Positions 36,000-64,000 of a DNA stretch of 64,000 bases are shown here, in pieces. The DNA is taken from the sequence record NC_042060.1; one strand, given 5' to 3'. A program made the translations under genes and the position numbers. Below the pieces are notes generated by a model. The model saw only the letters and a list, made by a program, of their open reading frames with translations, had not been told where the DNA came from and ran no database searches. Within the stretch, counting starts at the first letter, position 1; the number at the start of each line of letters is the position of its first letter.

Positions 36000-36821
<822 letters not shown>

Positions 36822-36843: not shown

Positions 36844-37377
36844 TTAACTTTCTAGATAACGGATTTGACCATTTTCTAGATAACGTGCTGCACCATTCTC
36901 TAATAGTCGGATAGTATCTGACGTATCATCAATACGTTGAATTAGTATATTACATTCACCATAGTAAGCATAACTACTCGACATAGCTACTATCGTGTAT
37001 GGAACAATATCCGTAGTTGCATTGATTGGTGTTGTATCGAATGAAATATCATCTGGTCCAAGCTTCCAACCTCGTGAACGGTTAATTTCTTCAGCAATCG
37101 CTTTAGGTGTTAAAGTACCAACTATCTTAAGGATAGATCCTTCACCAATAGCTCGTGGATCAGCAAAATCTAACCGACGGTAAGTTAACATGTACTTAAT
37201 GTCAGTAGTAATGTCGATCATTTCAATAAATGTACGTCCAGGCTCAATCGTGGTTGGACTAAAAAACATATCTTCAAATGTAACTGTTTCTGGTTTGAAG
37301 TTTATTTTTAAATCATCCCGCGCAAGTTTTACTAGCGCATTCCTCGATGCCATGTCATACGGAAAGATATCCTGCAT
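36844..37377 (-). CDS. Probable virion protein with C-terminal RxLE[ND]G repeats (gp143 position)
   Basis: Paralogous N-domain (YRRLDF); ends RLLENG-AA-RYLENG-QI-RYLES. Confidence 0.75.
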   Translation of the reverse strand: MQDIFPYDMASRNALVKLARDDLKINFKPETVTFEDMFFSPTTIEPGRTFIEMIDITTDIKYMLTYRRLDFADPRAIGEGSILKIVGTLTPKAIAEEINRSRGWKLGPDDISFDTTPINATTDIVPYTIVAMSSSYAYYGECNILIQRIDDTSDTIRLLENGAARYLENGQIRYLES

Positions 37378-54924: not shown

Positions 54925-55800
<876 letters not shown>

Positions 55801-55808
55801 GGTGTGTA

Positions 55809-56252
55809 ATGGCTGATACAAGAGCTGAATTAGTAGCTGCTTGGAATGTGGCTAATAAACCTAAAGATAATAATGGTAAGCCTAGGGATTTAACTGTTGA
55901 TGATGTTGAATTTATAGGGACTGATACATTCTTAGCAACTGGTACAAATGCCAAAACAACAATGAGAGCGAAGACCAGTTCACTTTATTTTAAAGGTGAG
56001 ACAGTTATTTACTTTAATAGACGCTCTTTACCAGAGTACTGTCTTGGTATAAAAGTACCGGGTAAACCAACTGACTATACTGATAATTTAGAAGTAGCTG
56101 AAAAATTAAGAGATGTTTACGGTATTCCATTTATTATAGATGAGATACAACCGCAACCTATTACTGGGAATACGGTTACGATACATCCATACTTTAATAA
56201 CTTGTCGTGGATACCAACAATACCAGTAACTCTTGAATTTGAAAGTAGTTAA
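55809..56252 (+). CDS. Virion protein, stand-alone paralogous domain (gp126 position)
   Basis: YFNRRSL motif; 147 aa. Confidence 0.65.
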   Translation: MADTRAELVAAWNVANKPKDNNGKPRDLTVDDVEFIGTDTFLATGTNAKTTMRAKTSSLYFKGETVIYFNRRSLPEYCLGIKVPGKPTDYTDNLEVAEKLRDVYGIPFIIDEIQPQPITGNTVTIHPYFNNLSWIPTIPVTLEFESS

Positions 56253-62443: not shown

Positions 62444-62474
62444 CATAAAGCCCTCCCCGAAGGGAGGGCCTATG
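62444..62474 (-). terminator. Capsid-gene terminator, gccctccc family
   Basis: GCCCTCCC cgaa GGGAGGGC with a TTTATG tail on the minus strand, 4 nt after the TAA of the readthrough extension. Confidence 0.8.
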
Positions 62475-62478
62475 TCTG

Positions 62479-62559
62479 TTACTCTTCTAACTTCCGGGCA
62501 TTACCGTCTTCCAAATAACGGATAGTCCCATTTTCTAGATAACGGTAACCCTTTCCAGC
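62479..62559 (-). CDS. Putative stop-codon readthrough extension of the major capsid protein (AGKGYRYLENGTIRYLEDGNARKLEE)
   Basis: 26 sense codons in frame after the capsid TGA, with no upstream start of their own. The peptide matches the gp143 C-terminal repeat. Confidence 0.72.
   Translation of the reverse strand, partial: AGKGYRYLENGTIRYLEDGNARKLEE
62496..62551 (-). promoter_or_regulatory. Putative readthrough-stimulating RNA hairpin 8 nt 3' of the capsid UGA
   Basis: Folded by hand: mRNA nt +12..+33 pair with +59..+38 (20 of 22 positions, 5 of them G-U), ACUA loop, plus GGG/CCC at the base after a 2-nt bulge. Confidence 0.62.
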
Positions 62560-64000
62560 TCACGGCTTAAGATCAGCAAGCTTACCGTTGAACTGAGTTT
62601 CGCCCATGACTTTCTGGAAGCCAGTGATCTTGAACTCTAGTGCGAACGGAATGTTGTTGACGTGTAGGTTGAACGGAATGGCCGCGATTTCGCGAGTAAC
62701 CTGGTGACCACCACGAGTGATCGGTAGGTCAGCGATAACAGTAGATACGTAGAAGAACTGGCCCCAGGAGAGGATGTCGTTTTCTTGTTGTACTGCGCGG
62801 GTCGGAATTACAACTAGCTTACCATCAAATAGCTGGTTGTTGGTGGAAACGATATCGTACTTGAGATAAGCACCTAGAGTACGGTCGTCACCTTTAGTCA
62901 TTAGATAGTTAGCAATCTCTTTGTCGGAGCAGAAGAGATACATCGGAGTTTCATCCTGGTTACCGGAGATAACACGGAAGGCAGCTTCAATGTTGGAATC
63001 ACGGTGAGCCGGGAATAGCTCAGCTTTAACACAGTTTAGGATCGCAGCGCAAACGTCGTCCCAACGATCTTTAGACTTGATGGTGTCGATGACTTTCTCA
63101 AGATCTAGTTCTTTGTAACGATAGGTCGGACGCATTACAGCGGATAGTGCACCTTCGATGATACCAAACTTCGGACGGTTGTAACCATTGTGTACAACTT
63201 CACGTAGTTGAGCAAGGTAGTTAAGCATGCGCTTAACAGCGTTGTTGCTGTTACGGATGTTGGTGTTAACGGTTAGAGCTTTAACAACCTCACCCGGACC
63301 TTCATCGGTCATGGTGTCCATCGGTAGAGTTACAGGAGCGTGCATCGGGATCGGATGACGGAACTGTAGTGCACGGGTCTGTAGTAGGTGACCACGCTGA
63401 CGACGGTTAGTGTTGGTGAAGCGAGTATCTAGTTCGAAACCGATAACAGCTAGGTCAGTTAGCTGATCTAGAATAGCTTTAACAGCCGGGTCAGCATTAT
63501 CCATTACCTGGCCATCTTCGTTTAGAACTTTATCGACGTAAGTGTCGGTAGCACCAAACTTAGAATCGCCTTTGGATAGGCTGATAGTACCACCAAAACC
63601 AACGCTTAGACGTAGGCTTAGTTTAGCAGTCTTAAGGTCGTTAATAACGCCATCAGCTGAACCGTCGATGAAAGTGGTATCGCCACTAACAACAAGGTCA
63701 TCGCTATCGAAACGGATAACTGCGTTCCGGGTATCACCAACTAGATCGGGCTGGAACACAGCGCGAGGTAGACGGTCAACCTTGAACTTAACAACTTTAC
63801 CGCCGAGTAGAACGAATAGGTTCTTTAGACGACCAGCCGGATCAATGGTGTCAGAAACTTCAAGCATGCCACGCTGAATGAGTAGGTTAGCATTGGAGTT
63901 ACCCATTAGATCAAGACGTACGTTCGCTTTTAGCGGAGCAGTAGTGATAGTTAGGTTCTGCTCGTTCTTGATGGTGTACGGAGGAACAAGAGCCGGGTCT
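62560..64000 (-). CDS. gp120: Major capsid protein, 3' part (5' end outside window)
   Basis: The frame stays open to the window edge; strongly biased, GC-richer high-expression codon usage; position and sequence match the phiKZ MCP; ends LADLKP-TGA. Confidence 0.88.
   Translation of the reverse strand, partial: DPALVPPYTIKNEQNLTITTAPLKANVRLDLMGNSNANLLIQRGMLEVSDTIDPAGRLKNLFVLLGGKVVKFKVDRLPRAVFQPDLVGDTRNAVIRFDSDDLVVSGDTTFIDGSADGVINDLKTAKLSLRLSVGFGGTISLSKGDSKFGATDTYVDKVLNEDGQVMDNADPAVKAILDQLTDLAVIGFELDTRFTNTNRRQRGHLLQTRALQFRHPIPMHAPVTLPMDTMTDEGPGEVVKALTVNTNIRNSNNAVKRMLNYLAQLREVVHNGYNRPKFGIIEGALSAVMRPTYRYKELDLEKVIDTIKSKDRWDDVCAAILNCVKAELFPAHRDSNIEAAFRVISGNQDETPMYLFCSDKEIANYLMTKGDDRTLGAYLKYDIVSTNNQLFDGKLVVIPTRAVQQENDILSWGQFFYVSTVIADLPITRGGHQVTREIAAIPFNLHVNNIPFALEFKITGFQKVMGETQFNGKLADLKP

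Follow-up and report, generated by a model that had tools for sequence, protein, structure and literature searches.

Two genes of one jumbo phage that lie about 25 kb apart, one in the lysis cassette and one for the major capsid protein, encode the same short terminal peptide, and the capsid copy is found behind a stop codon. Is the second copy translated, and if so, what would such a peptide do at both places? The DNA in which the question arises (64,000 nucleotides, referred to below as the window) is from Pseudomonas phage PA7 (genus Phikzvirus), to which it is 100% identical; PA7 is a relative of phiKZ, to which the window is 99.5% identical; PA7 coordinates are obtained by adding 124000 to the window position. 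The gp143 gene (36844..37377, minus strand; 177 aa plus stop) is located in the lysis cassette between the genes of the holin gp142 and the endolysin gp144 (36000-36782, minus strand), and in phage Noxifer the gp143 homologue is likewise found between the holin and endolysin genes. The holin gp142 and the spanins are also encoded on the minus strand, as is the major capsid protein, a homologue of phiKZ gp120, of which the 3' part of the gene (62563..64000) is seen before it continues past the window end. A preliminary description of this DNA had interpreted the shared peptide as a modular attachment tag on head and tail. The evidence discussed below supports the idea of a tag, and we infer its binding partner.

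The triple unit at two loci

The C-terminus of gp143 is TIRLLENGAARYLENGQIRYLES followed by the stop codon, i.e., a tail module of 23 residues (residues 155-177; 36847..36915, minus strand) composed of three 8-residue units, each with one Arg, one Glu and usually one Gly. The capsid gene ends in ...ADLKP and a TGA codon (62560..62562, minus strand; preceded by a Pro codon and followed by G), which is a proposed leaky stop. It is followed by an extension of 26 in-frame codons (62482..62559, minus strand) that encode the triple unit AGKGYRYLENGTIRYLEDGNARKLEE, by a second stop, TAA, which closes the extension (62479..62481, minus strand), and by a G+C-rich, terminator-like hairpin (62448..62471, minus strand). 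Because this hairpin comes right after the extension, the extension is part of the capsid mRNA. There is no start codon within the extension, which is unannotated in nearly all public records. Translation of the open reading frame (ORF) confirmed that the gp143 tail has three units with the same period as the capsid extension. A 20-aa ORF with a GTG start (62501-62563, minus strand), which overlaps the stop and the extension in another frame, is not kept open in relatives and is probably spurious.

When the extension is compared with gp143 by BLASTP, 13/20 residues are identical (E = 2e-7). Six-frame scans of the window and of all 280 kb of the phiKZ genome detect the unit, doubled or tripled, at two loci only, the gp143 tail and the capsid extension; across 47 phiKZ-like records there are also two places per record. 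This two-locus uniqueness, together with the BLASTP E value, confirms the observation and excludes chance at the peptide level. At the level of DNA the picture is different from that first drawn. A 17-mer reported to be common to the two loci is indeed present in exact form at 36869-36885 and 62528-62544, with one more copy (three mismatches) inside the gp143 tail, but a comparison of 14 genomes gave it no significance beyond that of the identical residues. The longest DNA word common to a genome's own two loci has a mean length of 7.7 nt, and that common to loci of different genomes a mean length of 7.9 nt and a maximum of 17 nt. As a genome's own loci share no more DNA than foreign loci do, we reject the 17-mer as a functional element or a sign of gene conversion; it merely follows from the identity of the residues and the choice of codons.

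The gp143 copy was examined in an alignment of 46 homologues, drawn from a collection of 5.8 billion proteins and with identities down to 33%. There is no variation at R157, E160, R165, E168 or R173 and almost none at G170, and the tail is the best-conserved stretch of the protein. The same conserved columns are found in 25 further distinct gp143 tails from IMG/VR loci. The proposal of a tag had hinged on conservation of the motif in gp143 orthologues, and on this point it stands unrefuted, the motif being the best-kept part of these proteins. In an AlphaFold2 model obtained with the family alignment the tail has a medium pLDDT of 63-72, with single beta-bridges at the residues that flank each invariant Arg, so that the beta-hairpin first proposed for the peptide is a candidate fold. 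A profile search of the PDB with the module yielded chance-level hits alone (E > 0.8), a search of the Pfam and PHROG families identified none that covers it, and a literature search with the motif strings returned unrelated words alone.

Two further observations concern the neighborhood of these genes and their variants. One contig (IMG/VR 3300011906_000001) harbors two gp143-like genes (L057 and L053), of which the second has lost each of the three Arg residues from its tail; in the capsid gene of the same contig the stop is TAA and the extension is absent. The gene upstream of the capsid gene, just past the window end (L001:4027-4560), encodes gp119, a vertex-binding head protein. A paralogous relation between gp143 and gp119 was considered and rejected: both are exactly 177 aa long, but BLASTP detected no similarity.

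The frame behind the capsid stop codon

A genome-wide count showed that an open stretch of 26 codons after a stop is not unusual within one genome. Such a stretch in a single genome proves nothing, and the case for readthrough therefore rests on comparison among relatives. We compared 18 IMG/VR loci in which the C-terminal 300 residues of the capsid protein are 73-100% identical to those of PA7. The first stop codon is TGA in 18/18 of these genes, as compared to about 19-21% of the long open frames genome-wide. The base that follows is A at 13 of the 18 loci and G at the other five (C in Noxifer). At all 18 loci, and also in the same arrangement in a further locus (L079) and in phage Noxifer, the TGA is followed by 24-30 open in-frame codons that encode the units. 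At the 18 loci the two other frames run into stops at different points, the codon that ends the extension varies (TAA, TGA or TAG), and the hairpin follows about 10-30 bases on. The Arg, Glu and Gly columns are fixed across 18 distinct extensions while the codons vary (CGT, CGA, CGG, AGG and AGA for Arg; all four for Gly), and in close pairs the dN/dS ratio of the extension is 0.16-0.51, vs 0.14 for the last 28 capsid codons. Judged from these substitution patterns, the extension frame is under protein-level selection.

In every case examined, without exception, a TGA at the capsid end is paired with a long in-frame extension. Of about 20 lineages with a TAA stop (including RAY, RTH11, SPN3US and pVa-21), all but one display at most 10 open codons. 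The exception, Xoo-sp14, has a TAA followed by 52 open codons with no recognisable motif, which we take to be a chance occurrence. On a 13-kb IMG/VR contig (L081, 1628-2239) the capsid gene ends in TGA-A followed by 203 in-frame codons that encode a Big_2 Ig-like domain (E = 4e-9), which would be another type of decoration by readthrough within this clade. The Big_2 Ig-like domain is a classic capsid decoration.

These comparisons bear directly on the possibility that the extension is never translated and is either a relic of an old duplication or a stretch held in place by a DNA or RNA constraint between the stop and the terminator. The unremarkable length of the open stretch in any single genome would fit such a scenario, as would a search after the stop that found no readthrough-stimulating RNA structure. 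However, about 20 diverged lineages retain the TGA, the frame and the residues of the motif, with synonymous codon changes and with the two other frames closed; the link between TGA and a long extension is without exception; neither an RNA fold nor a DNA word is conserved; and in other relatives the same place is occupied by an Ig-like domain or by a tail of the Goslar type (see below). We therefore consider an untranslated extension very improbable.

UGA is the leakiest bacterial stop codon, and it is further weakened by a following A or C and by a preceding Pro or Gly. None of the seven phiKZ tRNAs is a suppressor tRNA, and the stop/extension region yielded no Rfam match, SECIS included. In the absence of a suppressor tRNA, a SECIS element or a conserved RNA structure, plain near-cognate decoding would be the route; leaky decoding of UGA can do without any of these devices. 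Taken together, the conserved TGA, the open frame and the motif across relatives back the capsid readthrough that was originally suggested, and on these comparative grounds low-level readthrough of a deliberately weak capsid TGA is very likely. Because both copies are conserved across related giant phages, a small share of the capsid subunits probably carries the gp143-type tag. A literature search found no published mention of readthrough or of an extension for the phiKZ capsid.

Phage capsid genes with a leaky end are known from other systems: the Q-beta A1 protein is the product of UGA readthrough of the coat gene, and gp10B of T7 and T3 arises by a frameshift near the end of gene 10. In these phages, as in the arrangement proposed for the phiKZ type, the leaky end of a capsid gene extends a few subunits, the number of which is set at translation. 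The difference is that here the phage is a jumbo phage with a 280-kb double-stranded DNA genome, and that the 26-residue extension, known here from sequence, repeats the tail of another virion protein.

A separate feature of this region is the 3' end of the capsid gene itself. In every chimallivirus capsid 3' end examined, including those of Goslar, RAY and RTH11, a G+C-rich hairpin is immediately followed by a conserved (T)TTATG(C/T)CGT-like word (window 62448-62471, minus strand, and the bases 3' of it; loci L004-L021, L029-L031 and L079-L101). Together, the two resemble a terminator joined to a conserved signal, which may be a start site of late transcription.

The gp143 body and the parallel in phage Goslar

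The gp143 protein is composed of a globular DUF7941-type body (residues ~1-150) and the tail. The Pfam family PF25613 (DUF7941) is matched by 40/46 members of the gp143 family at E <= 0.01 (best 4e-12); PA7 gp143 itself scores 18.7 bits (E = 0.0013), which is under the 27-bit cut-off. In the AlphaFold2 model the overall pLDDT is 86.7, with values of about 90 for residues 10-150. The sole significant fold match of this model in the PDB is chain 0 of 9xqd, a component of the phiKZ outer peripheral baseplate (E = 1.4e-6, TM 0.59/0.69); a sequence search of gp143 against the PDB returned nothing useful. We take chain 0 to be gp127, an identity that is from the phiKZ atlas paper and not from the fold-search output; in that paper the N-domain of gp127 is modelled in the outer baseplate. 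According to the predicted model, the gp143 body thus has the DUF7941 fold of the baseplate protein gp127. The other DUF7941 proteins of the phage are gp126 and gp127, and their homologues are encoded on the plus strand of the window (span 54928..56252; gp127 homologue 54928-55800, gp126 homologue 55809-56252). A six-frame scan of the window as well as separate checks showed that the tail module is absent from both. The contention that the triple unit is found on two unrelated scaffolds is borne out by these data, one being the capsid protein, via the post-stop extension, and the other a tail-type DUF7941 domain (PF25613 in 40/46, 9xqd fold).

A similar arrangement with a different peptide is found in phage Goslar. 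Here, the stop of the capsid gene is TGA-A, behind which lie 28 in-frame codons and then a hairpin (L029:1386-1472), and the extension is without phiKZ-type units. Residues 6-24 of this extension align with residues 158-176 of Goslar gp23 (10/19 identities, E = 4e-6), a protein of 180 aa that matches DUF7941 over profile positions 4-174, has no C-domain and is encoded by a gene that adjoins the endolysin gene. A degenerate DNA pattern for the heptapeptide shared by the two sites has 43 hits in all of IMG/VR, and the two hits in Goslar are exactly the capsid extension and the gp23 tail. A comparison of the gp143-family profile with the Goslar gp23 profile was not significant, and the link between gp143 and gp23 therefore rests on Pfam and on the fold. 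The capsid genes of PhiEaH1 (L215) and RP12 (L217) also end in TGA-A, followed by 18 and 15 in-frame codons, respectively, and have an Asn/Asp-Gly-Phe element in common with Goslar. No gp23-type proteins of these two phages were among the matches listed, and for this reason the Goslar-type pairing holds for Goslar alone. Hence, in two lineages with unrelated tail peptides, the tail of a small DUF7941 protein is repeated behind the capsid stop. This co-variation between the lineages, i.e., the phiKZ type and Goslar, is what argues most strongly for a binding site that is shared and encoded by the phage.

The Goslar proteins also offer a model for the nature of such a site. Goslar gp23 is estimated at ~2140 copies per virion and is not seen in the maps (PMC13742148). 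The segment that follows the N-domain is predicted to dock on the N-domain of the next protomer by beta-sheet extension, which would yield head-to-tail chains, and filaments of the gp23 paralogue gp22 were shown in negative-stain images (PMC13742148). The body of gp143 has the same predicted fold as these filament-forming DUF7941 proteins of chimalliviruses (Goslar gp22/gp23, phiKZ gp126/gp127), and gp23 has the same build as gp143, with its tail repeated behind the capsid stop. However, in the Goslar study the DUF7941 filaments are assigned to the peripheral baseplate, and there is no mention of readthrough or of an anchor on the capsid (PMC13742148). Furthermore, the phiKZ-type triple repeat is unlike the Goslar linker and is not found in gp126 or gp127.

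On this basis, a mechanism can be outlined. Host ribosomes would occasionally pass the capsid TGA such that the module forms the C-terminus of a minority of the capsid subunits, which number roughly 1600. The gp143 tail and the capsid copy would be recognised by the same partner, which may be the DUF7941 N-domain, with the tail docking on the next protomer to form head-to-tail chains as predicted for the Goslar type. The capsid-borne copy would then be an anchor that ties gp143, or chains of gp143, to the head, and the rate of readthrough would set the number of anchors. That the extension is translated, how the module folds, which partner it has and that it attaches to the head are all things that we infer. 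As a whole, docking of both copies on one partner, with the capsid copy as the anchor for gp143, is the reading that we put first, at a probability that falls somewhat short of an even chance.

Several observations can be weighed for and against docking. The gp143 tail starts where the DUF7941 linker starts, which is counted in its favour. In phiKZ, the capsid protein's C-terminal arms form a six-helix bundle at the capsomer center and, at the vertices, touch the outer protein gp244 (PMC11297242); from this position, an extension could plausibly reach the outside. In several lineages the gp143 tail is kept, yet the capsid gene ends in TAA without an extension. These lineages are counted against docking of the capsid copy, but they may also be seen to favour docking because chain formation would continue to require the tail. 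Genome-by-genome co-variation of the two copies is not seen within the phiKZ clade, which is another point against docking, as is the medium pLDDT of the tail in the model. The phiKZ atlas models 40 proteins and gp143 is not among them, transposon sequencing showed that insertions in gp143 are tolerated, i.e., that it is non-essential, and the protein has a reported role in regulation of the holin; all three are counted on the same side.

The latter role opens another possibility, in which the tail serves holin regulation and the capsid copy competes for the same site, such that accumulating heads would shift the timing of lysis. In plasmid assays gp143 sped up holin triggering or, with a truncated holin, blocked it (PMC12894885), and the dispensability of gp143 and its location between the holin and endolysin genes, in Noxifer as well, would be in line with an assembly-sensing lysis clock. 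The role as a holin regulator was, however, assigned to the first domain of gp143, which is predicted to contact the holin N-terminus (PMC12894885). In addition, gp143 is recorded in the annotation as a virion structural protein, the Goslar counterpart gp23 is found at some two thousand copies per virion, and the other carriers of the module are tail and tail tube proteins with no link to lysis. We give little credence to such a clock as the purpose of the module.

The module in other phages

If the DUF7941 N-domain were the partner of the module in all cases, the module should be confined to phages with such a domain. A search of IMG/VR with a degenerate DNA pattern for the triple unit yielded 65 hits, of which about 50 are the last 20-22 residues of an ORF on non-jumbo viral contigs that are 5-80 kb long; a small number occupy the N-terminus instead. 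Among the proteins with the module are a tail tube protein of a siphovirus (PF06199), tail proteins (phrog_1101 with Phage-tail_3; phrog_376) and one that resembles a baseplate protein. The same pattern gave 37 hits in 596 Gb of cellular genomes, about six of which are apparently genuine, i.e., viral DNA is strongly enriched in the module relative to cellular DNA. Given this viral distribution and the lack of a Pfam, PHROG or PDB entry, the triple unit is, as judged from sequence searches, an undescribed module that is specific to phages and located at the ends of exposed virion proteins. The modularity suggested at the outset is upheld, as many further phages have the unit at the end of a tail tube protein or another tail protein. 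Because these include phages without DUF7941, the DUF7941 N-domain cannot be the universal partner of the module.

A profile search of 1.8 billion representative proteins identified further architectures. Two to four tandem triple units with Gly/Ser/Pro linkers are found in three proteins (P0086, P0145 and P0170, the last behind an FG-GAP propeller), one DUF7941 protein (P0106) has the module between its N-domain and a further domain, and a tandem-domain protein (P0088) ends in the module. For P0086, which has four modules, an AlphaFold2 model built without an alignment was uninformative (pLDDT 42).

On some non-jumbo contigs (L186, L207 and L152/L208) the module is found in ORFs of 45-80 aa, each composed of a short leader and the triple unit, right after an ORF of ~100-130 aa. 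At another locus (L197; IMG/VR 3300022918_000013) the module-bearing open frame is without a start, and a 135-aa ORF in another frame ends 31 nt past the in-frame stop, which may reflect a frameshift into the module.

The distribution is what would be expected if the module were an autonomous surface adhesin, borne by exposed virion proteins and binding weakly and multivalently to a polymer of the host or the environment, a mode of action also proposed for Ig-like decoration domains. The triple unit at the end of a PF06199 tail tube protein, phrog_1101, phrog_376 and other proteins on ~50 non-jumbo contigs, the viral over cellular enrichment, and the multi-copy arrays with flexible linkers (e.g., in P0170 and P0086) would all be consistent with such a function, as would the Ig-like domain in the capsid extension of L081 and the gp143 tails in lineages that have no capsid copy. 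The difficulty is the parallel in Goslar, where capsid extension and DUF7941 tail are paired with a different peptide, for which a shared phage-encoded partner is a simpler explanation than two unrelated adhesins. Moreover, a length of 22 residues would be very short for a domain that binds on its own, and the module is without a known ligand. We regard an adhesin as possible but doubtful.

Small modules that decorate virion proteins are known in a larger form. Fraser and colleagues reportedly described Ig-like decoration domains on phage structural proteins, often added by programmed frameshift. Like these domains, the module is a small, promiscuous unit that ends capsid, tail tube and tail proteins of unrelated phages, sometimes via recoding. 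In contrast to the Ig-like fold of 80-100 residues, however, it comprises only ~22 residues in three 8-residue units. The choline-binding repeats of cell-wall proteins are short binding units of roughly 20 residues. They resemble the module in being very short repeated units, sometimes in arrays with flexible linkers, but the module has an 8-residue unit in threes and there is no relationship in sequence or fold, i.e., the resemblance is a lead only.

Alternatively, the module could bind to itself as a small beta-sheet zipper and thereby join any two carriers, such as gp143 and the readthrough capsid protein, or accessory proteins and tail tubes. There are exactly two carriers per genome in phiKZ and in Goslar, at one other viral locus (L195) the module forms the end of two ORFs, multi-copy arrays exist, and the beta-bridges in the AlphaFold2 model flank each invariant Arg. 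Against this idea, most other viral loci have a single carrier within the 5-14 kb examined, and the gp143 tail is found in lineages that lack a second copy on the capsid. Self-binding is, in our view, improbable.

The proposal of docking on a shared partner may be extended further. Since gp143 has an effect on the holin too, competition for the tail-binding site could link the assembly of heads to the timing of lysis. In its widest form, the proposal would be that chimalliviruses use a conserved leaky capsid TGA to equip a few capsid subunits with the docking tail of their most abundant small DUF7941 protein (phiKZ gp143, Goslar gp23), that an unmodelled "cloud" of DUF7941 filaments is thereby anchored on the head as well as the baseplate, that head assembly is coupled to lysis, and that the triple unit is a new, widespread connector; this combination of claims is speculative, and we consider it unlikely to hold in full.

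phiKZ is a model jumbo phage in which the capsid and the whole virion have been solved at near-atomic resolution, yet no readthrough form of the capsid protein has been described. If real, the extension would be a hidden, sub-stoichiometric component of the capsid, invisible to symmetry-averaged maps and to standard proteomic databases. It would offer a candidate anchor for DUF7941 proteins, thousands of copies of which were reported in Goslar virions but have not been placed there, and it would tie a protein of the lysis cassette to the virion. More generally, the analysis defines a very small, portable peptide module on the capsid, tail tube and tail proteins of many phages.
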